Positions 2,750 through 56,200 of a DNA stretch of 64,000 nucleotides are shown here, in pieces (the stretch's first letter is position 1; every line of letters starts with the position of its first letter). Position numbers and translations under genes: made by a program. Source of the DNA: Octopus sinensis (lineage: Eukaryota); assembly GCF_006345805.1 (NCBI RefSeq), contig NC_042999.1, positions 134,726,001 through 134,790,000 of the forward strand. Reading direction: 5' to 3'. The notes beneath the pieces are model-generated. The model was not told where the DNA came from and made no database searches. It was given only the letters and a program-made list of their open reading frames with translations.

Positions 2750-3382
2750 ATTATGGCTGCCCCCTCGTTAACGAGTATGGCCTTTGCACGAAGCTTAACT
2801 GTTACTGGTGCTGTGATCGAATGTGACTTTTTAGCCCAGCTAAAGATCTACAATGTCTTGTACATAATTGGCAACTAATACCTTTACCAGTAATAGCCCG
2901 CCCGGCTGTGGTTGTAACTGGGCTTCATGTACCTTTGCATGTCGTTTAAGTCCTCCTGCCGAATTACACTTTCTTCCACATGCCCGACAGATATGATTAG
3001 TATGGTGTGCTACACCACCACCAGTGGCCAGGTTGTCACTCATCTGTCTCGCTTTATGGCTACGAAGATGACTCTTGAGTCCAGCTTTACTGAGGCAGGG
3101 TCTTGCACAGACATTGCATGTCAGCATCAAAGGAAGACTCTTCCCATCTGGAAGTGTAACAGCGATGCCCTTCCTGACATCCCTCCTTACTTTCTCATGT
3201 GCAATTCGAGATTTCTCAAAAGTGGCTGTCCCCTCGTGCACAATCCTCCACCTGCTACGATCAATAGCTTTGCCTTCCCATGTGTCAGGAGAGATGCAAG
3301 GATCCCTTAAGGATGCCTTCAGCAAGTCCTTATACCTCTTTTTTGGTTTATGTGGAGGTCGTTCTCCTTTAGCTAACTCTCC
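2750..3382 (-). mobile_element. RTE-clade LINE 3' fragment with three C2H2 zinc fingers
   Basis: ORF 2840-3469 (-): YGELAKGERPPHKPKKRYKD...W..KAIDRSRWR, then CNVC..SHLRSH and CRAC..RHAKVH; a third finger CQLCTRHCRSLAGLKSHIRSQH* at 2802-2873 after a frameshift. (TACA)n on both sides. Confidence 0.85.
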
Positions 3383-3454
3383 ATACATACATACACATAC
3401 ATACATACATACATACATACATACATACATACATACATACATACATACATACAA

Positions 3455-6400
3455 GCACCATAGCTGCACCCTCGTTAGAATAGAAAAGCCATTGCCAAAA
3501 AGACTTACTGAAATGATACATTATTGATGCCATGTGATGCCCGTATATGACTTTTAAGCCCAGCCAAACTTTTATACATTTTATTACATACTGCACAACT
3601 GTGCTGGCTAGCAGGGGAAACAGGTGCCACGATATGCACTCTCTTACCATGTCTTTTCACATTTTACATATGTTCTGTTGTGAATTTTAATAGCCACATC
3701 ACTGTTTATCATGGGTCGATTCCTGTGAGATTTTTGATGGCTCACCAGGCCTGCATGACTCAAACACCTCCTCCCACAAACCACACACAAAAAAAGCAAC
3801 ACTCTCTCTTTCCACAGGTTTCCCTCTTTCTAATCCCCCTCCTTATTTTCTCATAATTCACTCTCTTCCCCTCAAACCATGAACCACCATCATGCACTAT
3901 CTTCCTCCATCCATCACGGTCTTGTGCCTCTCTCTCCCAATCACCAGCTGCAATTCCTGTCTGTAATAGAGCATTTTTAAGGCAATTCTTAAACCTTAGT
4001 TTAGGCTTATGCGCTGGGGTCCTGCCATCTTCCAGCTCGCCATGCAATAGCTCCTTGGGTAGTCGCGCATTACTCATCCTTACCAAATGTCCCCCAACAC
4101 CTCAAACAACTTTACAAAATCATTGACACTATACTTCCACTGCCACTCCTCTCAAGCACCTCCACATTACTAATGGCCATTTTCCAGTTTATCCCCCAGA
4201 TTTTTCTCAGACAGTATTGATGTTATCGTTCCAATTGCCTTATATGTTTACGGTAAACAACCCATGCCTCACTCCCATATAGCAAAGATGGGAGGATGCA
4301 CGTGTTATATACCTTAACTTAAATTTGTGAAGATATATTATGTTGTTTCCACAGACGCCTATCAAGCATACCAAAAGCACTACTAACCCTGCTGATTCTA
4401 TATGAAATTTCATCATCAAGACCAGCAGTGCTCAAAGTACTTCCTAAATAAATAAATCTAGGCACAGTCTCCAACCTTTGACCGTTATAAAAGGTTCTAC
4501 ATACTTCTTGGAGGGAGCGGGCTGGTACATTATAGCAGTTTTTTTCAGTTTGATCGTTAGACCCAATGCCGCACATGCTGCAGAAATTGCATTCAGCATG
4601 TGCTGCATATCTTTCTGGGAATGTGCCAATAGGTCACAATCATCTGCATACAAGAACTCAACGAGGTGAGAATGCAGAACTTCCGTTTTTGGCGCAGAGT
4701 CTTTTGAAATTGAACAGTTTTCCAGCTGTCCTATATCTTATATAGATCCCTTCAGTGCAATCTTTAAAAGCTATTTGAAGGACTATTGCAAAATACATAG
4801 CAAACAATGTAGGAGCAGGAATATCACCTTGTTTTACACCATTTTCTACAGAAATTGGATCTGATAAGGAACCTCCAACATTAACTCTTACTTCCATCTT
4901 GTCATGAAATTGTCTAAGCATTCTCACAAATTTTTCAGGGCATCCTAGCTTTTTAGGATCTCCCAAAGTGCAATTCTATTGACAGAATCAAACGCTTTTG
5001 TTAGGTCAATAAAAACCTGCTATAAGTTCATATCCTGTTCTATGCACCTCTCTTGCAACTGTCTAGCTGAAAATATATCCATAGTACTCCTACTATCCCC
5101 AAACCCACATTGCGATTCTGGTAGAACACCATCAGCAATGTGCAGAAGTAATCTGTGCAGCATTACCCTACAGAGGACCTTTCCAGCAACAGCTAACAGA
5201 CAGATGCCACAATAATTACCACAGACTTCCTTTCCACCTTTAGATTTATATAGTATCTCCATAATTGCATCATGTCAATCCGGAGGAACCTCTTCACTAT
5301 GCCAAACCCTCTGAATCACATCCGTCAACATTGTTCGGAGATGATCACCACCATATTTATATATCTCTGCACCTAGTCCATCCACACCAGGGCCTTTCCA
5401 TTGTTCAATTTCCTGATTTCTGCTGTTTATTTCAGCGAGGTTTGGAATTTCTGCTATAAGATATATATTGGTCTCTCAGGTATATTATCAAAAAAAGAGA
5501 GTTCAACTTCTTTCCATCTCCAAACAATATCTTTAGGACTTGTTAATAATTCTGTGTCATCTTTGCTCTGAAGCGGCGCAAACTTTGGTGAAACAGGTCC
5601 ATAAACTTTTTCAAGAGAGAGTAAAAAAGTTTGGAATTGTTAGCATTTGAAGCTTCTTAGTTTTCATCGCATTTATCACTTCACCAATTTTCCTGCATCA
5701 TCCTCGGCTTCCTCTGCACTGTTGATTTTACTGCCTTGAAATATGTAACCACTGTCCTGTTTGCTGACATGTCAACATTTTGCAACATATTAAATGCCTT
5801 TCGCTTCTCCTCTGAGATAAGACGAACTTCATTATCGTCAAACTAATCTTGATGTATTTTTACAAAACCAAAAATGTTACTTCAAACCTCGTATACTCTT
5901 TCTTTGAATGACTTCCAGCTTCCATCACAGGACAAATTATTTATCTCACTCACAAATTCATTACGTACTGGCGGAATCTTAAGTTTATCGACATCAATCC
6001 GTTTAGGTAACTTGTCAGTATTTGCTTTAACCTTAGGCTTGACAACAAAATTCACCTTGACACGCAAAAGCCTATGGTCAGTCCAGCACTCTGCACCACA
6101 CATTACTCGTACAATAGCAAAGTCCCTAGTATCTCGTATCCTGGTGAGGGTGTAATCTATGAAATACCATTTCTTAGAACCGGGGTGCATCCATGTCGTT
6201 TTATACTTATTCTTTACTTGAAACATTGTATTCATGGCACACAAATCCATCTCTACGCACATTTGTAACAGCAGAAAACCATTACTGTTGGAACTCCTAA
6301 TCCCGTGCTTTCCTAAGATGCCCCAAGTCTCCCAATCTGCACCAACGCGAGCATTAAAATCACCTAAAATGACAACTTTGTCATCATGGGGCATAGTGCG

Positions 6401-7030
6401 TATAATCTCTGTAAGTGATAGACAGAAGGCAAGTTTCTCATGCTCTGATGAATTCATAGTTGCAGCATATGCACTTATGAGTGTTACATAGTGATCTTTT
6501 CTTAATGGAAGTCTTAGAGATAGCAAACGATCAGAATGACCACATGGTAGTTCCTCAAGTTTTGAAACAAGAATGGCTTTGGTTGCAAATCCCATTCCTG
6601 ATTCTCTCTTATAGGCCCCCTCTCTACCGCTCCAAAAGAAATGATATCCATCAGATTTCGCTATAAAATTCCCCTTTCCATGAATTCTTGTTTCGGCTAG
6701 CGCTACAACATCCATATCATATCGTTGTAACTCTTTTGCAACAAGCGCGGATCATCTCTCCGAATGAGATTTCAGACAATCATTGTCTTATAACTTTCGA
6801 ACATTCCAACATCCTACATTCATAGGCTTGCATCTTAACCTCAGTTTACTCGCAGTTGCAGTATGACGACCGATTCCAGGCTGTGGTGCTGTGGGACACC
6901 TGACAGGCCAGACCACAGAACAAAATGTTCCAGAGCCCCTTTTGCTATTTGCTTCAGTATCAATATCAACTTTCATTGTTTAGTTGTGCCTTTTTAAGTT
7001 TCGGCCAGCCATGTACATACAAGATGTTCG
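3455..7030 (-). mobile_element. Near full-length, frameshifted RTE-clade LINE (APE endonuclease + RT)
   Basis: Minus-strand fragments: NVGCWNVRKL, DVVALAETR, LGDFNARVG, TWMHPGSKKWYFIDY, WTDHRL (endonuclease); ESQCGF, GVKQGDIPAPTLF, YADDCDL, FIYLGS (RT); RLPKELLHGEL..KPKLRFKN (C-terminus). (TACA)n on both ends. Confidence 0.92.
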
Positions 7031-17096: not shown

Positions 17097-17859
17097 TTTT
17101 CTCAAAATAACCACCAAAATTGCCAATACATTTCTGTTTCCTTGCCACAGAATAAAAAATGGACTTTTCGAAGAAATCTCAACCACATTTGCTGAAGAAT
17201 TGCTCTACTAATTGCTTAAGCTCATTTTGATTTTTAAGAATATGTCCTTATAAATATTTCTTAAGATAGAAATATATACTAAATTCGCTCAGAGTGAAAT
17301 AAGGGCTCTAGGATAGATTTCAGAACGTAGCGAAACGAAGAAGCTTAAGTTGTTGAAAAACTGACAGCAGTAGTGTGTATTGTCTTGAAGATGCGAGAAT
17401 AGAATGTTATTTTCCTTCCTGATACTGCCTACCATTTGACTTTATAATCTGATAGATTTGTTAGCAAAATCCCATAAGATTAGGCCAAGGTGCTCTCCAA
17501 AATAAAACTCAGAAAATTCTATTGATCTTTAGTGAATGGTTATATTATTGATCTTCATTGATGGCTTTTGTTCGCTAGATGATATCTTAGTTTCTGAGAA
17601 GCAAAAGTAGACTGGTGCTTTGTCATGTATTTTACCTTTTACTTGTTTCAGTCATTAGACTTCGGTCATGCTGGGAGGTTTTTTTGAAGAAGTTTTTGGC
17701 TGAATAAATTGACCCCAGTACTTAATAATATTTTCTTTTTTTGCTAAGCCTGGTGCTTATTCTACCGGCCTAGTTTGCTGAACCGCTAAGCTACGAGGAT
17801 GTAAATACAGCAACACCGATTGCCAGTGGTGGTACGGGACAAACACAGACACAAAGACA

Positions 17860-21308: not shown

Positions 21309-22231
21309 ATAGTGAATGGTTACGTTTCTGAGCTTCATCGATGACTTTTCTTCGCTGGATGATCTCAGAATGGTTGGGGTCATGTATCCCTTCTGAACAT
21401 AAATTCTTCACACTTCTACCTAAAAAAAATCATATGTGCTGCTCTTCTTTGTTTAAACCATAAAAAATCGGCAGATCTGTGACTTCTGTCGCTTTGTAGA
21501 TTTTACAAAGGTACAGCATTAAATTTCCAGTTCGCATCATCGAGCGAAATCACATTCACAAACCAGTCCTCACAAACCAATCCTCATAATGAAACAAAAA
21601 TACTCACAATGAAAAGATCCCCTTTCCCCCACCTTACATGTTAGAAATATATACTGCTGCTCATAAGACCTCCATAAAACGTATGATGTATAATTTTCAG
21701 CTGAGTGGAATCACGATATATCTGGAAAAACTCTCCAATAGTATCACTGACTATTCATGTGTCATAGGTTTCATCTATCTTCCACATAACTATTGCAGCT
21801 ATTTTAATAGCGAATCCTTGTCTACAAAGTTCTGTTATCTATTCTTTTCTCCATAATTGTGAGAATTGTAAAGCTAATATTTAACATTTCACTTGTAATT
21901 TTCTTATTTTCATTGTCTTTGGTGCATGTCATTGAAACGATTGAGAAAAAAAGATTGTCGAAAATCGATAGTTATTATCACCGACAGTATTGTGTGTCGG
22001 TGACCCAACCATTGTAATTACATCAACCCCGTACACCTTGACATAATCAGGTAGAGTGAGTATATAATTCACAATGCATTGATGTCGTTAATGATTGTTC
22101 GGTTGCGTGTGCCAAATCTACCATAGCATAACTGAACTTGTTTTATCATTTCTTTTATCCTGATGTATTTTTTTTTTAAATTGTCAACACATGATGTTTT
22201 CCATTTTTTTTTTTTTTGTCATTTTCCAGAA

Positions 22232-22549
22232 ATGAATCGTCTCTACTTTGCTTTCGTCATATTGCTGAGTTTTGTTTATGTGAGTTCATATATTCAAGAA
22301 GACATTGAGAAATGCTATCGTCAACTGGGTACAAACGATGCTGACACCCAGTTGCAGTTCTGTATAGGGCAGGTACAAATGAACTGCTCTTCCTTTAAGT
22401 GGAGCCCAAAGAATGTTGTTTATAAATCACCGAAACAATCAGGAGCAAATAATTTGATTATACCTCGAACGAGGAAGGAATATAGATTGCTTAGTAACCA
22501 AGAAAGATACGATTTCCTTCGTAGCTTATATCTTTTAAAGCAAGATACG
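22232..22549 (+). CDS. Tyrosinase-like gene, coding exon 1 (signal peptide + N-terminal region, 106 codons)
   Basis: Polypyrimidine tract and ttccAG acceptor ending 22229; ATG at 22232; hydrophobic signal peptide MNRLYFAFVILLSFVYVSS; tyrosinase N-terminal motif RKEYRLLSNQERYDFLRSLYLLKQDT; donor acg|GTAAGA at 22550 (phase 0). Confidence 0.9.
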
Positions 22550-22583
22550 GTAAGAATGATTTATTATTTCTATATAAACATAT

Positions 22584-22805
22584 GCGGAGAGCTGGCAGAA
22601 TCGTTAGCACGCCTGGCAAAATGCTTAGCGGCATTTCCTCCGCCATTAGGTTCTGTGTTCAAATTCCACCGTGGTCGACTTTACCTTTCATCATTTCGGA
22701 GTCGATTAAATAAGTACCAGTTACGAACTGGGGTCGATGTAATCGACTAGCTTCCTCCCCCAATATTTCAAGCCTTATGTCTATAGGAGAATGAATTATT
22801 TCTAT
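22584..22805 (+). mobile_element. SINE family A in tyrosinase intron 1
   Basis: gcggagagctggcagaatcgttagc...gttcaaattcc...tggggtcgatgtaatcgact. Confidence 0.8.
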
Positions 22806-23334
22806 ACAAACAACTATCAAGGAGACACTTGTTAATATTATTTCAGATAAACTTATATACTTACACAATACTATTGGTTACAGTGTTTACAACAAGGGTC
22901 ATGAAATTCTTTTTATGATAGCCCACTTTAAGTTTTCTCCACATTTTCACATGGCACCACATATGTATATGACATACATACATAAAAATATGCTCATGAG
23001 TTCCCAACCATATCCATTGCTAGTAATGTTTAAATAAGCAAAAGTTAAAGTAATCGGCAGGCAAAAAGATATCAACCAACTGTTCAATGGTCCACAGAGA
23101 ACATGCCAGGAAACACCTGTGTGTGTGTATACGAGTCTGTGTGTGTGTGTGTGCGTGCGTGTGTGTGTATGTGTTTGAGTGTGTGTGTGTGTGTATGTGT
23201 GTGTGCGTGTGTGTGTGAGTGTGTGTGCGCGCTATGCATATATACATACATTCATTCATACATACATACATACATACATACATACATACATACATACATG
23301 CCTACATGCATACATACATACATACATACATACA

Positions 23335-23365
<31 letters not shown>

Positions 23366-23379
23366 GTCAGGTCACTTAT

Positions 23380-26315
23380 GAGGCTCTCATAAGTGCTACT
23401 GGTAACATGGAATCCAGTACAACCTATTGCATGCAACTAAACTGGCACCTCCACCAGGCTATCTTTGTGAGTGGGGTTGCTAGAAATCCAGCAGGATTAA
23501 AAACAAGACCTCTTGAAAGGTCGGATGAACCTAGTGCAGGCTCAACGGCTATCTAACAATAGCACGGGTACGCAGAAATTCCGGGATGGTGGCCGGCGTG
23601 CTGAAAGACCACTGGGAGTGAGGCACCCCTCAGCTTTTGTTAAAGCATGTCTCTCGGAGAAGGTCACTCTAATATAAAACCAGATATGCAAGGGATGACA
23701 TTGAACATTTTGGGGATCTTTGGTTTGTGCTAGAGATCATGGCGCTCCCACATCCCTGAGCCTGCAACTCATATTGGCACCAGGCATCTTGTTCCGGCTT
23801 GTCTCTGGAGAATGTCAATAAATTTGAGAGGGTATGTGAGGTGACGTGCAAGCCTTATTGCTCAATATGTGTCTTTCCCCCCACCCTCTATATATTTATT
23901 TATGTGGCGATGGGAAGGTGGTGAAGCATGCAGACCTGACGGGCTGGAAGCATGTAGTCAACGACCTGCACGTAGGCGGCCCATGCTAGATATAAAGTCG
24001 TCTCCTTGTAGCCCAAGACAGCGGTAGGATTCGGTTGCTGCATGGGTGTCTGAGCAGCTCCATTTGGAGAGGGCACTGCTCACTCGAAGACCGGGGAGTT
24101 TCTTGAAAAGGTGAACCAAAAAATTGCCTGTCTTTCTATATCTGGTCAGTTTAGCACAAATGATGGATGTCCACCCTGCGCTTGAGAAACAAAGAGACTT
24201 TTATTTACAAAATCTGGATGGAACTTGAACATTTCATGTTAGAATGTGCGCACTCTGTTGGATAACAAAAGTGATTGTAGGCATGAAAGACGCACTACAC
24301 TTGCTTCTCGCGAGTTGAACTGTTATAACATTGATATAGCTGCACCTTCAGAGTCTAATGACTCTAAGATTGCACCTGAAAGGTGAGCGGTTTCCTACTC
24401 TAATAAGTGCCTATGCACCCATTCTGACTAGCTGTGGTGAAGATAAAACTATATTTTATACCCAGCTGAGAGTCATACTTAGGAAAATCCCAAATTCTGA
24501 TAAAGTCATTCTAGTGGGGGATATCAATGCCAGGGTTAGAACAGACTGGCAAACATGGAACTCTCTAAGACGTTTTGGAGTAGGGAAGATGATTAGCAAT
24601 GGTCTAATGCTGCTGGAGCTTTGCGATGAACATGGACTTTACATCGCAAGCACTCATTTTATGCACAAAGGTGACCACACAACAACGTGGATGCATCCAA
24701 GGTCTAAAGTTTGGCACTTGCTGGATTATGTCATCATCTGCAAGCGTGACATCTATGACATTTGTAATGTCAAGTCCTTTCATGGATCAGAATGCTGGAC
24801 AGATCACAGTCTGGTGCGAGCAAAGTTCCGGATGATGATTAAAGTGAAAGAGAGAAGATAGCCAGTCAGCACTCCTCGGTGTCTGAATGTCTACAAGGTA
24901 TATGAGGAAAGAGCTTCAGACTCGCTTGTCCAGCATTGAAAATACTGCAGCATGGGAAGATTTTTCGAGATCAGGTTCTTCAATGTGCTGCTGAAACACT
25001 GGCAAATGCTACTGCCAGACACAGAGACTGTTTTGATGAAAATGATGCTGAAGTTCAGCGACTATTAGCTGTAAAGCGCCATGCCCATAATGTATTGCTA
25101 CACAGAGGACTTTTTGCTGTGCAGCGAAATCTAGCACTTGCCCACTATAGCAGTGTAAAATCACTACCGCAGCGATCTCTCAGGAAGATGCAGAACACCT
25201 GATGGGAGGATCTTGCTCGTGATGTTCAGGCTGCTGCTGATGAAAATGACAGCAAGAAGCTTTACTATCTTATGAAGTAAGTTTATGGGCCTAAGAGCTC
25301 CACATCAGTTCCTTTGCTTTCCAAAGAGTCTTCCACTCTATTTACTAAATCAACAGAAATCACAGGTCGCTGGATAGAATTACTTCTTTGAAATCCCAAA
25401 CCCCGAGCCAGTTGTGGATGAAACAGTGATTGATACTATGCAACAAAGACCTATCATTGGCTCCTTAAATTCGACGCCTTCAATAGATGAAGTAATGACA
25501 TCAATAAGTAAATTGAATCTTGGTAGGGTTACCTGAAAGGATGGAATTTGTGCTGAGGTCTTACGATTTGGTGGTGATTATAACATACAGTCCCTTCATG
25601 AACTTATTAGTGCAGTCTGGAGGGATGGTGCAATGCTTAAGGACTGGAAGGATGCAATTATTCTTCCTCTCTATAAAGGAAAAGGAGCCAGAACAATGTG
25701 TGGTAACTACAGAGGTATTGCTCTACTATCAGCTGCTGGCAAGGCTCGGGCAAATATTCTTCTTACCCGCCTAAATGGGTGTCTCGTAAATAACGTCCTA
25801 TCTGAATCTCAATGTGGCTTCCGATCTGGCAGAGGGACAATGGATATGATTTTCACAGCAAGGCCGATGCAGGAGAAGTGCTATGAGCAGAATATGGATC
25901 TTGTGCAGGTATTCATTGATTTAATGAAGGCCTTTGATACTGTGAATAGGGCCTTGCTATGGAAAACACTTGGCAAACTTAGATGTCCGGATCACTTTGT
26001 ATCTATAATTAAATCATTTCATGATGTGATGGAGGCTTGGGTCAATGTTGGTGGTGGCATGGCGGGATCCATTCCTGTAGAGAATGGTATCAAGTAGAAT
26101 GCCCCAACACTCTTTCTTTGTACTTTTGCTGCTGCTTTTACTCATGCCTTTTCTAAGGTTAGCGCTCTGGGAACATATGTCAAATATCAACTTCTGGCCG
26201 CCTCTTTAATCTGCGCCGATTTGCTGCCAATTCAAAAGTTTTCCAGTCTCTTATTCGTGACGCCCTTTATGCAGATGACTGTGACTTAGTCACTCATACA
26301 GGAAAACACAGCTGT
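23380..26315 (+). mobile_element. RTE-clade LINE in tyrosinase intron 1 (long 5' UTR, endonuclease, RT to YADD), 3'-truncated
   Basis: NVRTLLDN..ERRT; ORF 24358-24861 (TLISAYAP, VGDINARV, TWMHPRSKVWHLLDY, WTDHSL); ORF 25633-26097 (ESQCGFRSGRGTMDMIF, FIDLMKAFDTV); YADDCDL at ~26270. Confidence 0.9.
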
Positions 26316-26734
26316 TGCAATAATAACACTGTACTTCCATGGGCCCACAGCTATGACATCAATATCAACATTAGCTTGTTAAAGGTCATCTATATTACGA
26401 CATCTAATAATATTTAGTGCTAATCTCTGATTATTTTGTCGATATAATTTATCATCTCAAGTTAGAATATACAGACACTGCTCCTCAGACAGTTGTACTC
26501 TTTTAATTCTTTTTGAAGAGCATCTCTTCACCCTGAAGAAGGAGGCTTGATTTTTCCAGTGTTTGTTTTCTTCCATTACTGGTTGCAGATGTTTGAGAAA
26601 CTACATCTGCCAACATTATCAAGGAACTCCGAGCCCCCAGAAACAGATGTTGGACTTGTAACATCATGCCTTCTCCCCTCTAATTCTCTGAGTCTATACT
26701 ATCTAAATACGTTTGCTCTATTAGTATATAAATA

Positions 26735-26940
26735 TATGAAGGCGGTGAGATGGCAGAACTGTTAGCACGCCGAGCAAAATGTATAGCATCATTTCGTCTG
26801 TCTATATGTTCTGAGTTCAAATTCCACTGAGGTCGACTTTGCCTTTCATCCTTTCGGGATCGATAAAATAAATACCAGCTGATGTAATCGACTATACCCC
26901 TCCCCCGAAATTGCTGGCTTTGTGCCAAAATTTGAAACCC
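26735..26940 (+). mobile_element. SINE family A in tyrosinase intron 1
   Basis: aaggcggtgagatggcagaactgttagcacgcc...gagttcaaattcc...gtcgactttgcctttcatcc. Confidence 0.8.
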
Positions 26941-27178
26941 TTTCATAAATATACATATATTTATATTTGAATGTTAATCATCTGAAAATTTTAATTCTTT
27001 GCCTTTTATTTATTTACATGTGTATATATTCAGTATATCAAACTCAAGGAGTTTTATGTGTTTGCATCATTGTCTACATACACAGATATATCCATTCCTC
27101 CATCCATCCATCCATCCATACATACATACATACACATACACATAAATGCATACGTACATACATACATACATACATACA

Positions 27179-27210
<32 letters not shown>

Positions 27211-27477
27211 CGCATGCATAAATACATATATACTAAGAAGGAGAGTAAAAATGTAAGACTGACATATAAAATGGAAATTAATATTTTAAAAGACAACTTT
27301 CACAGAAGAAGGAAAAAAATATATTTGATATGAAAACAAATCTCCTGTTCTTTCCAGAATAATAGAAATCTTTCATCGAAAACAGAAATCAAAATTAAAA
27401 GGCATAACTTCAAATAAAACTTATAAACGTTTGCTGTGTCCTAATCATTATGATTTTTAAAATTATTTCTTTTACAG

Positions 27478-27590
27478 AGACTGTCACCAAATGTATTCGA
27501 TTCTATCGCCTTCCTGCACACTGGTGATACTGCAAGAAACGCCCATGCTGGTCCTACATTTCTTCTCTGGCACAGAATCTATTTGAGAAT
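27478..27590 (+). CDS. Tyrosinase-like gene, coding exon 2 (CuA site)
   Basis: tttacAG acceptor ending 27477, donor at|GTAAGT at 27591. The 113 nt translate RLSPNVFDSIAFLHTGDTARNAHAGPTFLLWHRIYLR, with the three CuA histidines (LH, AH, WH). Phase 0 in, phase 2 out, matching both neighbours. Not in the ORF track. Confidence 0.93.
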
Positions 27591-27810
27591 GTAAGTCATG
27601 CAATCAAGTATTATTCTTCCAGGTTCCTTCTGCTCTTTTCCTGTTTCTTTATCTCTTTCTTTATTGATTTTTTAAACTTTTGCCTCTTTCCCTTCCCATT
27701 TTTCCGTTATCTTTTTGTGTTCTTATTTTCCTCCTCCCCCTCTCCTCCTCCTCCTCCTCCTCATCATCATCATCATATTATTATTATTATTATGATTATT
27801 ATTATTATTA

Positions 27811-28735
27811 TCTTTCGATTCTATTTACATTTCTTGCCGAGTGTCTTTCTGACATCTAGGGCAGGGAAACGTACTGTATACATTGGTAGGCCATTAAAAC
27901 AAACACATCAGACTGTTCATTTACAGAATCATGTGTTAGAGGAAAAGGAAAAAATAAAAAATAGAAAAGTAAACAAATAAAATAAAGGTGTGGTGGGGGA
28001 GAAAATTCAAGCGACAATGCTCTTCTCAATACGTGTGACGTACCGGTTAAGACAATCTTTTGCACTTCCTGCATGTATGGTAAGCCAGGGATCGTTCTTT
28101 AAAAAATTTCAGTTTCGTTTTTTTTATCATTTCAGGATGGTGCTTGTACCATTTGTCAGCAGTTTTGATTTTATAATGCCCACACATTATCCATTGTAGA
28201 TATTGGCCAACTCTGTCATGTCTTGATTTGTACTCTACAGGTGCTAAAACCTTACACCCAGAGATTAGATGGTCAACTGTTTCTATCCCATCGTTGCAGT
28301 ATCGGCACTTTGGGTCTACACCATTTTTCATCACATTGGCTTGATAGTACCAGGTCAATAAGCTCTGATCTTGGGCAACCAAAATAAATCCTGTACTCTC
28401 TGACTTTAGCCCTGAGCTCCGTAGCCACTAAATGGGTATGCTTCTGATCTACATCAGCTTGTTTGCTACGGGCCATATATTTGCCATGCTGAGGTTTTTG
28501 TTCCCACCTATCAGCCAATTGTTCAAGCGCAATTTGCTTTGCTATTGAGTTCAACTTCTTTGCAACTACAGCTGCTACACTTTCCTCATGCTGTTCAACC
28601 TGGATATTATGTATAAACTCACTTGAAAATTTTTTGCTCTCCTTCATAACAGACTGAATCTTCTTACGTCTTTCATGGTTTTTAATTAGCTTTAGCATCC
28701 AGTTGTTAGATGTTTCAAGATATTTTTCCAGTTCA
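27811..28735 (-). mobile_element. R4/Dong-like 3' fragment in tyrosinase intron 2
   Basis: AQDQSL...CRYC..ETVDHLISGC (CCHC knuckle) and QEVQKIVLTGTSHVLRRALS; 3' UTR resembles that at 36530-36626; flanked by (ATT)n/(ATC)n. Confidence 0.85.
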
Positions 28736-28758
28736 GTTGTGGTGGTTATCATCATCAG

Positions 28759-28827
<69 letters not shown>

Positions 28828-28840
28828 TATCGTCGTCGTC

Positions 28841-28881
<41 letters not shown>

Positions 28882-29416
28882 CAACTATGATATTGAATAA
28901 ACACCTATGCTTTAAATATATTAGTATATATAATATGAAGTAAACTACAAGATATTTATAAATTTCCATTTCAGATGCAATTTTTTACATTAAGAATAGC
29001 GTGAAACCCATTTAGACTTCTTAATTTGTTAACATAAATCGAACGCAATAATAGACACCCCATATATCTCATTATTTATAGGAATTGTGAGTCATGTTGC
29101 TCCATCAATTTGTTTTTCAAAGTAAATGATATCTACAGTCGCTGTGCACACACATATTCTGCGATCACTGGGGGCGTACACTCCCATCCGATCTTAAAAG
29201 TCTAAGATAAGTTTATAAATATACACTAACCTTTGCTGGCGAATTCTTGAGATATGCCAGTATACAAAAGATTAAAGCGTCTCTTGTACTAGAACAATTT
29301 GTGCATAATATAATTTTCCCTTGATAAATGAAATTAGTTAATCGATAAAAGTAAATATGTATTGAAATATGTTTTCTACGTATTAAATAGGGTTTACATT
29401 TTTTTTTTCATTTTAG

Positions 29417-31227
29417 CTTGGAAGATGCTCTTCGTGAAAAAGTACCTGGTGTAACAATTCCATTTTGGGATCCAACTCTTGACAGTCATCTTCCTAATCC
29501 TCGAGATTCCACTATGTGGTCAGATGAGTTAATGGGAACTATCAATGGTTTCGTCACTAAAGGGCCGTTTGCTAACTGGAAAACACCAATTGGTTATCTA
29601 GTAAGGAACGGGGGTTTCAGTACAAGGTTACCGACAAGTAGTAACATCGAAGATGTTCTCACTCGAACGAAACTCGAAGAGATCTCTGAACCAAATGCAG
29701 AAGATCGATATAACCTTGAATCCATGCATAATTCTATGCATGTTGCTATTGGAGGTCACATGGCTCGGGTACCATCATCGCCCATGGACCCAGTTTTCTG
29801 GCTACTCCACAGTTACGTAGAACTTGTCCACACGCGTTTCACTGAAAACCAAAGGCGACACAACGTTAATCCCGCAACAGATTATCCTTCGAATTATGGT
29901 TTAAATGTTTACGCTCCCAATCAAAGTATTGGTCTTATGAATTTAACCGTTGCAGAAGCATTAAAAAATACTAGTTCTTACACTCATTTCTACAAATATG
30001 ACTATAGTTACTTGAAAAACTGTACTCTCGATCCAAAGGTATGTAATTCTCCATACCTAACCTGCAATAATGGTAGATGCGAGTCGAAATCTAGAAACTC
30101 AACTCGTTGCAGTACTTTAATTCCCTATCAGAATATGTTTTGTATCAACCGTAGATGCGATGTAGATGAATGGGCATTTATTCCGGTTGAAGTTATTTAC
30201 GAACGACCTTTCGACACGATGAAATTTGGAAATTTTCCTATCAAAAACGGCGTGCCGAATTTGCTGAATGATCTGTATGATGATAATCGACTTCAAAATT
30301 CCTCCGGTAATTCTAACAGAAATAATTGTCAAATAAACAAGTGTTGTGGTCCTGCAGGAAGACTCAATGTTCGAGCTATTGGTTTAAATTATTTTGGAAC
30401 CTATGAAGAGATGGCGGTGATAGATCGCAGATTAGCTGTATCATCGGATATATCTTACTTGGGGATCAGAGACCCGCAGAAAAATAACAGTGTAGTATTT
30501 TTGTCAGCGTCAGAACAATGTGGAAGAATATGTCGTCCTTCTTGTTTAGTGCCGGGTTCAAATCCGCCGAGATACATACAATGTATAGGATTGTTGAACA
30601 TAACACGTTACAACGCTACTTTGTACGGTAAAACACTCGCAGACGCTTACATGAACGTGTGGGATTATGGAAACCAGATACGACCGAAACTGAGACATGA
30701 AAATATTCCAATAGTGTTCCATTGTGATGACAGCCAGTGGCCATTTAACAACAACAATACATCTACAACAACGACGACGACGACGACAACAACAACAACC
30801 ACCACAATACTGCCGACAACAACAACACCACTACCAACAACAAGTACAACATCAACGACGACAACAACAACACCAACTCCAACGACGACAACAACAACAT
30901 CAACGACGACAACCACAACACCACTACCAACAACAACAACCACAACACCAACTCCAACGACGACAACAACAACCACAACACTACTACCAACAACAACTAC
31001 AACATCAACGACGACAACAACAACATCAACGACGACAACAACAACATCAACGACGACAACAACAACAACAACCACAACACTACTACCAACAACACCAACC
31101 ACAACACCACTACCAACAACAACAACCACAACACCAACTCCAACGACGACAACCACAACACCAACTCCAACGACGACAACAACAACACCAACTCCAACGA
31201 CTACAACAGCGACAACTACATATGGAA
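29417..31227 (+). CDS. Tyrosinase-like gene, coding exon 3 (CuB site, Cys-rich C-terminal domain, Thr/Pro-rich stalk)
   Basis: ttttAG acceptor ending 29416; at+c gives WHRIYLRILEDALREKVPGVTIPFWD. CuB motif HNSMH...DPVFWLLH; molluscan tyrosinase-like Cys-rich region (WAFIPVEVIYERP, GLNYFGTY, IPIVFHCD); donor aa|GTAAGT at 31228 (phase 1). Confidence 0.93.
30759..31220 (+). repeat. Coding ACN-rich repeat encoding a ~154-aa Thr/Pro mucin-like stalk
   Basis: In-frame TTTTTPLP / TTTTTPTP / TTTTTTS units built from ACA/ACG/ACC codons within exon 3. Confidence 0.9.
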
Positions 31228-31343
31228 GTAAGTGGCCTTTTTTTATCATATCATATGTTCATATTACATCGTGTTTGTGTAAGAGAAGGCCTAGTAGTCT
31301 GGTGATCGTAGTAGTTTAATGTAGGTGGTGGTAGTCCCAGCTG

Positions 31344-31725
31344 GTGGAGGCGCAATGGCCCAGTGGTTAGGGCAGCGGACTCGCGGTCATAGGATCGCGG
31401 TTTCGATTCCCAGACCGGGCGTTGTGAGTGTTTATTGAGCGAAAACACCTAAAAGCTCCACGAGGCTCCGGCAGGGGATGGTGGTGATCCCTGTACTCTT
31501 TCACTATAACTTTCTCTCACTCTTACTTCCTGTTTCTGTTGTACCTGTATTTCAAGGGGCCGGCCTTGTCACTCTCTGTGTCACGCTGAATATCCCCGAG
31601 AACTACGTTATGGGTGCACGTGTCTGTGGAGTGCTCAGCCACTTACACGTTAATTTCACGAGCAGGCTGTTACGTTGATTCGGATCAACCGGAACCCTCA
31701 TCGTCGTAACCGACGGAGTGCTTCC
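31344..31725 (+). mobile_element. tRNA-derived SINE in tyrosinase intron 3 with 11-bp TSD (different head, same 3' half as family C)
   Basis: A box tggcccagtgg, B box gtttcgattcc; TSD agtcccagctg at 31333-31343 and 31726-31736; 3' ~200 bp shared with 21120-21295. Confidence 0.9.
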
Positions 31726-32234
31726 AGTCCCAGCTGATTTAACTAACTGGAGTGAGGATGGGGATAGCTTTATTAGGATTAAAGTAATCAAAATGTGAGA
31801 CAGTGCAGAGCAACGTAATCTAGGGTAGTAAAGAGTTTTACTGCAGGTAATGTTGAATCTTCTATGCAATGGATTGTCTAAATGGATAGACTTTGATTGT
31901 ATGGATTCTGACTTCATGTTTCGTCACGATTTGCAATACGTCCTTATACGAGGCAAAAAACAATTATATCCATCATAGTTACATAGGAACCAAATGTTAT
32001 TTTACATATGTTATTGTTCAGTACTAATTTCTAAGTTTTGTTGTGTTAAGCTGATTAAAATATATCAATAAAGGTATTTTTTAATTAACGGTGATTTGAA
32101 TTCAGTTAGGCATGTCATTAACATATCGGACAATTCTACATTGCCGCCGCGTAGCAATAGGTTAACTTTATTATATGCACTACCTACTCATCTATATATA
32201 TATGTGTGTGTGTGTGTGCATGTGTGTGTGTGTG

Positions 32235-32290
<56 letters not shown>

Positions 32291-32832
32291 TATGTGTGTG
32301 TGTGTGTATAGATGAAGTGTCTTGTCTACATATTAATTATTGAGAGTGACAATGGACACAAAGCCTCCCTTAATATTATTCAAACTGAAAGCGGCGAGCA
32401 AGCAGAACCGTTACCGCGCCGGGCGAAAGGTTTAGTGGCATTTCGTCTGTCTTTACGTTTTGAGGTTGTCTTTATCTTTCATCGATAAAATAAGTACCAG
32501 AAATAAGTACCAGAAATTTCTGACTTTGTGCCAAAATGTGAAACCGGTATTACTCAAACTGCCAAATTCCATACTGGTTTTCTGGCATATACATTTATCA
32601 AAAAGAGAAAAATGCTAAGAGACAATCAGAACCTTTTAAATTCTTGGTGAACCTGACAACCAATGCAAGTGCCATTTCTTTGTTGTTACATATTAAGGGT
32701 AAGCTCAGCCACATCAAGCTTGCAACTCTCAACTTTACAAACGCCAGGACTATTAGTCTGTAAAGAATTGCAAATACTAGGCATATTACTGAAATTGTAT
32801 TCTTTCTAATGTTTCTCGTTTCTCTTTTGCAG

Positions 32833-33020
32833 ACTGCTACAATCCCAGGAGCTGTACCTCTAAGAAACGATGTCGATGTAAAGATGGAGATAAACAATCT
32901 TGCCGAAAAAGTTGTTCCCATTATGCTATTTGTTACTTTGGTCGTTACTATAAGATGTCTTGTGGCTACGGTCGAAGGTTTGAAAAGTCCATTGGAAAGT
33001 GTGTTTATGGATACTGCTAA
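32833..33020 (+). CDS. Tyrosinase-like gene, terminal exon 4 (chitin-binding type-2 / peritrophin-A domain)
   Basis: tctcttttgcAG acceptor ending 32832. Phase-1 reading gives (N)CYNPRSCTSKKRCRCKDGDKQSCRKSCSHYAICYFGRYYKMSCGYGRRFEKSIGKCVYGYC* with C-x13-C-x5-C-x9-C-x12-C-x4-C spacing and aromatic residues; TAA at 33018-33020. The four exons total 2430 nt, divisible by 3. Confidence 0.85.
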
Positions 33021-33351
33021 TACTAAGCAATATTCCCATTGATGTTACAATTGAAATGTTTCTCAACTACAGACCTTTGCATAGTAATTTGAAGAGGACA
33101 TAACCATCTAACACCCACCGCTGGATTGATTGACTGATGAATGGATGGATGATGAGTAGAATAAATGAATGAATGAATAAATGAATGAATGAAGGAAGGA
33201 ATGTATGAAATGAGAAAATGAATTGTGATATGAAAATCTATATAGAATCCGGTACTAACTTTCAACAAAAAGGTGGATATTTGATTTGGTTAATATTTTT
33301 CAGTTAATTATTTATTCGTCGAAATTCTTATCTAATCTTACTATAAAGCTC

Positions 33352-53628: not shown

Positions 53629-56200
53629 AAGGAAGCGAGTGGAGTCGCCCCATGTCCTGATTAATGATACATCTATTGATTGTGTCACAATAAAAACACT
53701 GGTAATTACGCAATCTGATAGTCGCTACCTCATATGAGTGACAATAAAAAAACAAAATATTGTGAATAATAGTGGTAATGAAACTAAAGCCATTGATGGT
53801 GACAGTGTTGCATCCGGCAAGCTCAGAGATTCTGCTCCGGTTCCAATCTGTCGATATCCAGAAAGGGATCGCCACACACGGCGTAGATGGAGCAAGCAAA
53901 TTAATTCTGTGGTCATGGACTTTTACTACCTGAGCAACCCGGTAGATGAAAATGATGCTCACGTTCGGGGTTACTAACAACGTATGTATGATTATTGGAG
54001 GGAAAAGGGATTATTTCAACTCACGGTACAGATACTATGTGATCAAGCTAGAGCAATAAGAAAAAGATCGTTGGTTCACAGAAGTAGAGCTCGAAGCTAT
54101 CAAAAGTCTTGGAAAATAGCAGCAGAGATAACGATGAAAATACAGTTCTTATTAATAAAAGTAATCTCATAACACAGGAAAGGAGCAGTGGTAGCTTACT
54201 TGATGAGAGACATAAAGATGATCTAAAAGAAGACGTTAAAACTAATAACGACATGACAGATGAACAAAAGGTAATCTACGACAGAATAAAGGCAAGACTC
54301 CAGGAGAACGGTAGCGACATTATTTGCAACCTGAAAAAGGTTGATCGATAGAAATCGAACCAAGAAACGAAAAATATCAATGAAATTCTGAAATACATTA
54401 GAACAAGAATCACAGAAACAAATAATTTGATCAAGGCAGCAAGTATTGTTGTAGCAGAAAACGTGGGTGTTGATGTCAAGAAAAAGAAATATAATGGGAG
54501 TGACAAAAGAAAAGATCCATGGTGGAAAAGAAGAATACAGGCAGGGTTAGATATGCTCTCGAAGGAAATCTCTGTGTTAGGCCAAAAAGAGAAAGTGGAG
54601 CTTAAAGAGAGAAAAAAATTCAGGGTGCTGAAAAGGGAGTATAATATTGAAAGAAAGGGCCTGAAAGTGGTAATGGAGGAACTGAAACAGCGCTTCCTTG
54701 CAAAGAAAGCAAAGATGGTAAAATACGACTAAAGAATGAAGGGGTTACCATCAGAATAGGTTATTAGAGTAGATCAGAAGAGATTCTATAAAGAAATAAA
54801 TGGAGAGTGTAGAGATGAAGAGTTGATACCAGATAACAATGAAAGTCAAATGTTTTTGAGTGACACCTGGAGCAAAGACAAGGAGCACAAGAAGGATGCT
54901 GAATGATTGCAGGAACTGAAACAAACAGTAGTCTGTCCAAAACAGGCGGAACTAGTAATTTCAGTTTGGGAAGTGAAGGAAATAAGCAAAAACATTAGCA
55001 ACTGGAGGGCCTCGGGACCAAATGGAGTTCAAGGCTACTGGATCAAAAGATTTGGTGAATATCATGCACGAAAAGCTGCGCAACTCAACACCTTGTTAAA
55101 TGCCGACCAAGTAACACGAGAGTGGTTAACATTGGGTAGGACAGTGCTGTGTTTGAAAAACATCGAAAAAGGCAATCGGGTAGACAATTAGAGGCCGATA
55201 TCGTTTTCCCATTTATGTGGAAATTATTGACTAGAATACTGGCAGAGTCAATGTACGAACATCTGGAAAAAATGGAGTCCTGCCACATGAGCAGAAGGGT
55301 TGCAAGCGTAAGTGCAGAGGTACCAAGGATCAACTTCTGATAGATAAAACTGTACTTAGAGAATGCACGATAATTAACAACCAAGTATCAAGACTTATGT
55401 GTAGAAAGAGACCCTGTGAAACCTCTGACAGCAGGCTGCTGACTGTTCTCACAGAATCTACCAGAACAAACAAGGCTGAACATTCTGAGAAGTGAAACAA
55501 CAACAACAATAATAATAATTCTGCAAAAAAAAATGGATTCCTGCCACATGAGCAAGGAGGGCTGCAAGTGTAAGTACAGAAGGTACCAAGGATCAACTCC
55601 TGATAGACAAAAATGTACTTAGATAATGCAATAGGAGGGAAAGTAACTTAGCCATGTCATGGATCGATTATCGTAAGGTGTACGATATGATCCCACATTC
55701 TAGGATTATGGAGTGTATGAACCTATTTGTTATTGCATCGAATGTTGAGCGATTGCTTGGAAAAAGTATGGCGAATTGGAGGACGAACCTGACAGCATAC
55801 GGAAGAAGCTTAGGGACAGTAGATATTAGGAGGAGAGGCATCTTCCAAGGAGACTGCCTGTCCCCACTGATCTTTGTACTGTACTTGATACTTCTAACTC
55901 TAATTCTGAGGAAAGCAAAAGCTGGGTATGTATTCAAAAGCCTCCAACAAAAAGTTAACCATTTGTTATTCATGGATGACCTTAAACTTTATGGTAAAGA
56001 TGAAGCCCAAGTCAGTTCCCTCATTGATATGGTGTATACTTGCAGTGCTGATATCGGAATGGAATTCGGGCTGAGAAAGTGTGGTGTGTTAGTTTTGAAG
56101 AGAGGCAAAATCAAATGTATGGACGGGCTAACGATACCGTCGGCAAGGTTATGAAGCAGATAGAAGAAACAGGCTCTAAGTACTTGGGAATTTTGGAAAT
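53627..56200 (+). mobile_element. R4/Dong-like retrotransposon, 5' end through RT, 3'-truncated and composite
   Basis: Starts directly after (AAT)n; N-terminal RRRWSKQINSVVMDFYY..GY..RMYDYWREKG..DQARAIRK; WKRRI; ASGPNGVQGYWIK; WIDYRKVYDMIPH; GIFQGDCLSPL; HLLFMDDLKLYG; KYLGILE. ~100-bp overlap at 55265-55370 versus 55525-55630 around an (AAC/AAT)n tract. Confidence 0.88.

Follow-up and report, generated by a model that had tools for sequence, protein, structure and literature searches.

An octopus tyrosinase gene that probably encodes a secreted, stalked enzyme ending in a CBM14/peritrophin-A-type domain

What protein is encoded at the tyrosinase locus of this stretch of octopus DNA, and does it end in a module that could hold the enzyme on chitin? 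The gene in question occupies positions 22232-33020 of 64,000 nucleotides from Octopus sinensis (RefSeq assembly GCF_006345805.1, contig NC_042999.1, forward-strand positions 134,726,001 to 134,790,000), and this whole stretch is referred to here as the window. An earlier note, composed from the letters without database searches, had described a secreted tyrosinase with a mucin-like stalk and a terminal chitin-binding domain, the last of which automated annotation could miss. Taken as a whole, the evidence is best explained by an intact octopus gene encoding a tyrosinase of the secreted alpha type (type-3 copper), a five-part protein whose CBM14 domain would serve as its anchor on a chitin matrix; the probability of this reading is put at roughly 70%.

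Reading and splicing by script gave four coding exons on the plus strand (22232-22549, 27478-27590, 29417-31227, and 32833-33020) with GT at all three donors, AG at all three acceptors, and intron phases of 0, 2, and 1 in that order. The spliced coding sequence of 2430 nucleotides is uninterrupted and specifies 809 amino acids followed by a stop codon at 33018-33020, so that the four phase-compatible exons and the product length given in the earlier note are borne out. Exon 1 (residues 1-106) supplies the start codon, the hydrophobic N-terminus MNRLYFAFVILLSFVYVSS, and a variable N-terminal region with three cysteines, and it closes at a donor (ACG/GTAAGA, the slash marking the exon border) that lies at the same exon end in Argonauta hians. 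Exon 2 (residues 107-144), which is also used in the O. vulgaris model CAI9720076, carries the CuA site. Exon 3 encodes, in turn, the remainder of the tyrosinase core including CuB (29417-30020, residues 144-345), a middle domain with 15 cysteines (30021-30758, residues 346-591), and a Thr/Pro stalk (30759-31227, residues 592-747) that runs up to a phase-1 donor (GAA/GTAAGT). Lastly, exon 4 (residues 748-809 and the stop codon), entered through the acceptor TTTTGCAG/AC, encodes a 10-Cys domain of the CBM14/peritrophin-A type. At 22205-22231, immediately upstream of exon 1, a long pyrimidine tract is followed by an AG two bases ahead of the start codon (ttttccag/aaATG); given these features, an untranslated 5' exon probably precedes the first coding exon.

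Comparison with relatives provides the principal support for this model. The A. hians gene for protein P0004 (locus L002) agrees with the window gene in its four exons and in their intron phases, and its last intron, likewise of phase 1, falls just ahead of the codon for the first cysteine of the terminal domain. The O. vulgaris model CAI9720076 shares the exon 1/2 and exon 2/3 junctions and the acceptor at 32833 with the window gene, and the donor of the remaining junction, 31227/32833, matches the consensus.

The N-terminus consists of MNR, 14 hydrophobic residues, and SSY; homologues possess equivalent hydrophobic N-termini of different sequence, and the segment is likely a signal peptide. 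The Pfam family Tyrosinase (PF00264) matches the core that follows over residues 111-286, scoring 112 bits where 22.6 is the cut-off (E 6.7e-32). All six copper-binding histidines are in place, as had been claimed: H120, H129, and H138 of CuA lie in exon 2 within the motif H-x4-F-L-L-W-H-R-x2-L-x3-E, and H248, H252, and H275 of CuB lie in exon 3 (DPVFWLLH). In a 12-sequence alignment the three CuB histidines are invariant and H120 is nearly so. Eight residues separate H120 from H129, a gap within the seven to nine residues reported between the first and second CuA histidines of mollusc type a PPOs (PMC11803259). Sequence matches to the core in the PDB comprise mollusc hemocyanin functional units and bacterial tyrosinases. 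For the fold, an AlphaFold2 (AF2) model was made on a proxy, XP_036357241 (P0002), the closest full-length protein at 89% identity, and its core superposes on the Bacillus/Priestia megaterium tyrosinase with a template modeling (TM) score of 0.74 normalized to the target. The gene product is, on this evidence, a predicted type-3 copper tyrosinase of the secreted mollusc type.

The middle domain (residues 346-591) bears the motifs QNxF..D..WAFIPV, CGRICRPSC, and FHCD..WPF, and cephalopods, gastropods, and bivalves all retain it in their tyrosinases. Within it, a conserved stretch of about 215 residues is encoded at 30117-30755 of the plus strand, and in the secreted tyrosinases of these three groups its motifs take the forms QNxF..D..W.FIPV, CGRIC.P.C, and F.CD..WPW. 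Profile searches of Pfam and of PDB sequences returned no family and no relative for the middle domain; the proxy model renders it beta-rich with low confidence, and the only fold match obtained with that model was to the tyrosinase core, with none for the middle domain. It is specific to mollusc tyrosinases and is perhaps a shielding or latency domain.

Of the 155 residues that make up the stalk (residues 592-746), 117 (75%) are Thr, 20 are Pro, and 7 are Ser; given its Thr/Pro composition, the stalk would be O-glycosylated. The Cys-rich domain and the Thr/Pro stretch anticipated by the earlier note are therefore both present, as the 15-Cys middle domain and the 155-residue stalk. The underlying DNA is an imperfect array of ACN-type triplets. 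The 155 residues in the window compare with about 85 in one O. vulgaris copy of the gene (copy 1, described below), a variation in length like that of a mucin variable number tandem repeat. The codon just before the exon 3 donor is GGA (Gly) in the window vs. AGA (Arg) in both O. vulgaris copies.

The last exon encodes ten cysteines. Six of them are spaced C-x13 (or x19)-C-x5-C-x9-C-x12-C-x4-C, with four extra cysteines upstream; the spacing noticed earlier is hence confirmed for the last five cysteines, with the preceding one lying 13 or 19 residues ahead of them. This pattern falls within the peritrophin-A register (CX13-20CX5-6CX9-19CX10-14CX4-14C with aromatic residues between the cysteines), the aromatics being Y (HYAIC), YF, YY, and F (RRFE). 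Among octopod homologues (Octopus and Argonauta) the domain is 38-48% identical, with all 10 cysteines and several glycine and aromatic positions invariant. When the spliced protein was searched against Pfam, as the earlier note had recommended, the expected Tyrosinase match was obtained with ease, but CBM_14 (PF01607) was reached with only 20.5 bits (E 5.5e-4), below its gathering score of 22.1, which counts against the domain assignment. CBM_14 is nonetheless the best Pfam family in five of five octopod sequences, and the orthologous C-terminal domains of gastropods and bivalves exceed the gathering score in eight of ten cases, at 22.6-30.4 bits.

Profile and fold comparisons point in the same direction. 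A five-sequence profile of the domain, searched against PDB sequences, retrieved the Aplysia kurodai protein EHEP first (8in3, E 3e-6), followed by Blo t 12 and two chitinases (E about 0.5) and then by two unrelated chains (E about 0.8). The same profile gave 271 matches at E <=1e-3 among 1.84 billion representative proteins; 10 of 10 sampled matches carry Pfam CBM_14, nine of them above the cut-off, and most are multi-repeat peritrophin-like proteins. A word-indexed homologue search with a domain alignment of 61-69 residues found nothing, the query being too short for the method. The AF2 model of the 61 terminal residues has a mean predicted local distance difference test (pLDDT) score of 87.4, and the ten top-ranked Foldseek matches in the PDB are all CBM14/peritrophin-A structures (EHEP, CHIT1, Blo t 12, Der p 23, Avr4, and Der f 23), the best being EHEP 8in6 and 8in3, while tachycitin ranks 16th. 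These ten have probabilities of 0.6-1.0, query-normalized TM scores of 0.45-0.64, and E-values of 0.018-1.7; none reaches 0.001, a weakness attributable to the small size of the query (61 residues). Considering conservation, sequence profile, predicted fold, and orthologues together, the terminal exon encodes a CBM14/peritrophin-A-type domain despite its sub-cut-off score, and it is because that score falls just under the Pfam threshold that the octopod domain escapes routine domain annotation.

The same architecture extends to other molluscs. A local hidden Markov model (HMM) of the 10-Cys domain was run over the tyrosinase relatives that had been retrieved. A C-terminal domain of this kind was found in tyrosinases of Octopus, Argonauta, two species of Patella, Littorina, Nucella, Gigantopelta (three genes), Physella, Candidula, a Logan assembly, Solemya, and Mactra, so that the proposed survey of molluscan tyrosinases has located the same architecture in cephalopods, gastropods, and bivalves; the same HMM did not find it in the retrieved relatives from Mytilus, Saccostrea, Argopecten, Pinctada, and Tegillarca. 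From this distribution the tyrosinase-CBM14 layout is judged to be old within Mollusca and to have been lost repeatedly. The full architecture can already be seen in XP_029634080 (O. sinensis), XP_014788111 (O. bimaculoides), CAI9720077 (O. vulgaris), and two A. hians proteins, and UniProt labels Patella caerulea KAK6178420 a 'Chitin-binding type-2 domain-containing protein'. Hence the sequences and one automatic label are already public, and the design is not a new kind of protein. Our literature search found no paper describing a fusion of tyrosinase and chitin-binding domains in cephalopods or other molluscs, and one preprint terms molluscan tyrosinase a 'single domain' enzyme. A shell-matrix tyrosinase of Lottia, Lotgi1|166196, has nine GPPVNP repeats (PMC3374290), and the Patella proteins have GPINP/GPVSP repeats at the same place; to judge from these repeats, the Lottia protein is a likely limpet orthologue of theirs. 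It is accordingly proposed, tentatively and at somewhat less than even odds, that the layout defines a conserved, mollusc-wide class of matrix-anchored phenoloxidases, undescribed in the literature searched. On this proposal the class would at first have tanned the chitin framework of shell and periostracum, and octopods, having no shell, would have retained and duplicated it for sucker cuticle, beak, or radula. In a variant of this proposal, the peritrophin-A domain of the class would bind phenolic substrates, as EHEP does, rather than chitin.

Within the octopods, the window gene is a member of a tandem tyrosinase cluster. A cluster of this kind has been described in Argonauta argo, where its genes undergo gene conversion and are highly expressed in the arms and mantle (PMC9635652). 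Over its first 591 residues, the window protein is 60-89% identical to octopod cluster relatives, the A. hians proteins being at 59-62%. Identity to the paralogue P0019 is mosaic, amounting to 33-40% in exon 1, 70-97% in exons 2-3, and approximately 46-55% in the last exon, and this pattern suggests gene conversion of the middle of the gene.

In the proposed mechanism, the stalk would be an O-glycosylated, extended tether, the CBM14 domain would anchor the enzyme on a chitin-containing extracellular matrix, and the copper site would convert tyrosine or catechol groups into quinones, by which that matrix would be cross-linked or darkened. Since shelled molluscs have orthologues, one of them the likely shell-matrix protein of a limpet, an ancestral role in the chitinous framework of shell or periostracum is suggested. 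In the shell-less octopods, candidate sites of action would be the sucker cuticle, beak, radula, stylet, and gut cuticle. The only octopod expression data found are those for the Argonauta cluster, which is highly expressed in arms and mantle (PMC9635652; 10.1101/2021.07.10.451900), a pattern at least as compatible with sucker or skin epithelium as with beak or radula.

Besides the sub-threshold Pfam score, several observations weigh against this account. The predicted junction 31227/32833, through which the terminal domain would join the protein, draws its support from homology. No annotated protein that was collected contains the second half of exon 3 or exon 4 in the right frame, and the missing public protein could reflect low expression; moreover, one of two O. 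vulgaris copies of the gene (copy 2) has a frameshift within its Thr repeat, either a genuine mutation or a fault of the assembly. Tyrosinase was undetected in argonaut eggcase proteomes (10.1101/2021.07.10.451900). Finally, EHEP and Der p 23 have the CBM14 fold without binding chitin (PMC10619976), so that the fold by itself is no guarantee of chitin binding, and the best solved match of the terminal domain, EHEP, is precisely such a non-binder.

The last of these points underlies the rival that survives best, in which the protein is the same but its peritrophin-A domain does not bind chitin and instead binds phenolics, tanned protein, or another matrix partner, recruiting substrate or docking the oxidase on a non-chitin matrix. 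EHEP, which leads both the profile and the fold matches, is a molluscan protein of three peritrophin-A domains that binds tannic acid and has zero chitin-binding activity, and the residues in contact with chitin vary from one CBM14 member to another (PMC10619976). Against this, most characterized CBM14 domains do bind chitin, including those of CHIT1, tachycitin, and Avr4, all of which are among the fold matches, and an enzyme joined by a Ser/Thr linker to CBM14 is the layout of chitin-directed enzymes. Chitin is also present in molluscan shell frameworks, beaks, and sucker linings. On balance a non-chitin partner is considered unlikely, and an anchor on chitin remains the preferred reading.

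A second rival, regarded as distinctly unlikely, concerns the gene rather than the domain: the locus could be a young, poorly expressed duplicate or a decaying pseudogene, with little 809-residue product and with exons 1-2 serving mainly as alternative 5' exons of a downstream paralogue. The public records lend it some substance. None of the three exact products (809 residues spliced, 777 by read-through, and 420 from a cryptic donor) occurs in a collection of 15 billion proteins, in which no protein covers the middle domain of the window gene at >90% identity either. O. sinensis XP_036357241 (tyr-1 isoform X3) is, over its initial 144 residues, 100% identical to the product of exons 1-2, and it then continues with exons 3-4 of a neighboring same-strand paralogue outside the window. 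In O. vulgaris (locus L001, OX597816.1:140200381-140264499) the window gene has two tandem copies, with exon 3 starting at 17334 and 50720; the tandem unit matches approximately positions 12078-49376 of the window at 97-99% identity, and the copy 2 frameshift, already mentioned, would suit a decaying gene. Nevertheless, the 2430-nucleotide frame of the window gene is intact, all copper histidines and all 10 terminal cysteines are kept, and the splice sites are consensus. Relative to the O. vulgaris copies, the exon 3 core has one to two differences in 1338 nucleotides, as compared with about 0.25-0.9% mismatches plus indels in the introns; these differences, like the zero to one in the last exon, are too few to estimate the ratio of nonsynonymous to synonymous substitution rates (dN/dS). 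Furthermore, near-identical tandem genes and low-complexity repeats are a common source of faulty gene models. RefSeq isoform X3 is a chimeric read-through model across neighboring genes. The warning that annotation could miss the terminal domain has therefore proved apt for this gene, given the chimeric isoform X3 and a misframed O. vulgaris model, but not for the family, whose paralogues and orthologues are annotated with the full C-terminus.

That O. vulgaris model, CAI9720076 (P0001), fuses both tandem copies and in each of them splices from 30038 to 32833, reading ...NCTLDPK/TATIPGAV..., which omits the middle domain and stalk and places the last exon in the wrong frame. The donor that it employs is a cryptic, in-frame AAG/GTATGT within exon 3 of the window gene (30038/30039, GT at 30039-30040, plus strand). 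If, alternatively, the exon 3 donor at 31227 were left unused, the frame would run on as the open reading frame (ORF) 29418-31319, terminating at the stop codon 31317-31319 of the plus strand after a tail beginning SKWPFFIISYVH; this tail has no counterpart in any homologue compared. Another frame across the last exon is open for 77 residues (32809-33042), and this ORF and the read-through are both present as the earlier note had them. It is very improbable that transcripts take either route and yield products without the chitin-binding-type domain, for even though the cryptic site is a good donor, is joined to 32833 in both O. vulgaris copies, and the read-through ORF exists, the model concerned visibly fuses two genes, the read-through tail lacks a homologue, conservation is absent from the other frame of the last exon, and in all well-annotated relatives the middle domain and stalk are retained, with the 10-Cys domain following in frame. 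A separate candidate, in which the last exon would be dual-coding and its other frame would specify a membrane-anchored isoform through the hydrophobic VVPIMLFVTLVVTI, was rejected, as that frame is not conserved in Argonauta, where it meets a stop after 39 codons.

With the intact, secreted tyrosinase retained as the most probable product, the analysis corrects, over its full length, the model of an octopus gene whose public annotations are truncated, fused, or misframed, and it identifies a C-terminal CBM14-type module as conserved within one lineage of molluscan tyrosinases. Should the module bind chitin, members of this lineage would be candidate agents of quinone tanning in the periostracum, shell framework, sucker lining, beak, and radula, and such tanning of chitin-protein composites would be of interest to research on biomineralization and biomaterials. 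Nothing is overturned thereby, since the combination of enzyme, linker, and CBM14 is already a familiar design.

The rest of the window, which has a G+C content of 37.6%, contains only long interspersed nuclear element (LINE) fragments and simple repeats besides the tyrosinase gene, and tblastn found no second tyrosinase gene within it. One LINE fragment with endonuclease and reverse transcriptase ORFs (24358-26097, plus strand) sits inside intron 1, outside the gene product. Together with it, stretches at 5882-6715 (minus), 55654-56154 (plus), and 2840-3469 (minus) make up a set of LINE-type endonuclease/reverse-transcriptase fragments and one C2H2 zinc-finger-like ORF fragment, and long simple-sequence tracts are scattered across the window. 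In intron 3, at 31335-31400, GGCGCAATGGCCCAGTGGTTAGGGCAGCGGACTCGCGGTCATAGGATCGCGG looks tRNA-derived and may be a short interspersed nuclear element (SINE); ARAGORN reported zero tRNA genes in the window.

Among known systems, the closest are the octopod tyr-1 relatives (XP_029634080, XP_014788111, CAI9720077, and A. hians P0004 and P0005), which share the exon structure and the order of parts of the window gene and correspond to the tandem alpha-type cluster described for Argonauta argo (PMC9635652). The window copy differs from them in its stalk, which at 155 residues contrasts with about 40-60, in the strong divergence of its exons 1 and 4 from the neighboring paralogue, and in having, unlike them, no correct public gene model. 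Farther afield, the tyrosinases of gastropods and bivalves (Patella caerulea KAK6178420, P. vulgata, Littorina, Nucella, Gigantopelta, Physella, Candidula, Solemya, and Mactra) present the same core, middle domain, linker, and 10-Cys domain, with matching spacing of the C-terminal cysteines. These proteins are approximately 30-40% identical to the octopus protein, their linkers are rich in Pro or Gln rather than Thr, and some of them bear extra C-terminal tails.

Two further comparisons concern the terminal domain and the overall layout. Among solved structures, EHEP (8in3, 8in6) comes nearest to the terminal domain by both profile and fold; it is likewise molluscan and has the same x5, x9, x12 cysteine spacing (PMC10619976), but it differs in comprising three peritrophin-A domains without an enzyme domain, in binding polyphenols instead of chitin, and in lacking the four extra N-terminal cysteines of the window domain. 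The GH18 chitinases (human chitotriosidase 5hbf, Ostrinia 3w4r, and nematode 6g9c), to whose architecture the earlier note had likened the protein, do show the same order of catalytic domain, flexible and often O-glycosylated linker, and one C-terminal CBM14 domain, and their CBM14 domains were recovered in the sequence and fold searches with the window domain. Their catalytic domain, however, is an unrelated glycoside hydrolase, and the likeness is thus an analogy of architecture rather than membership of a family.

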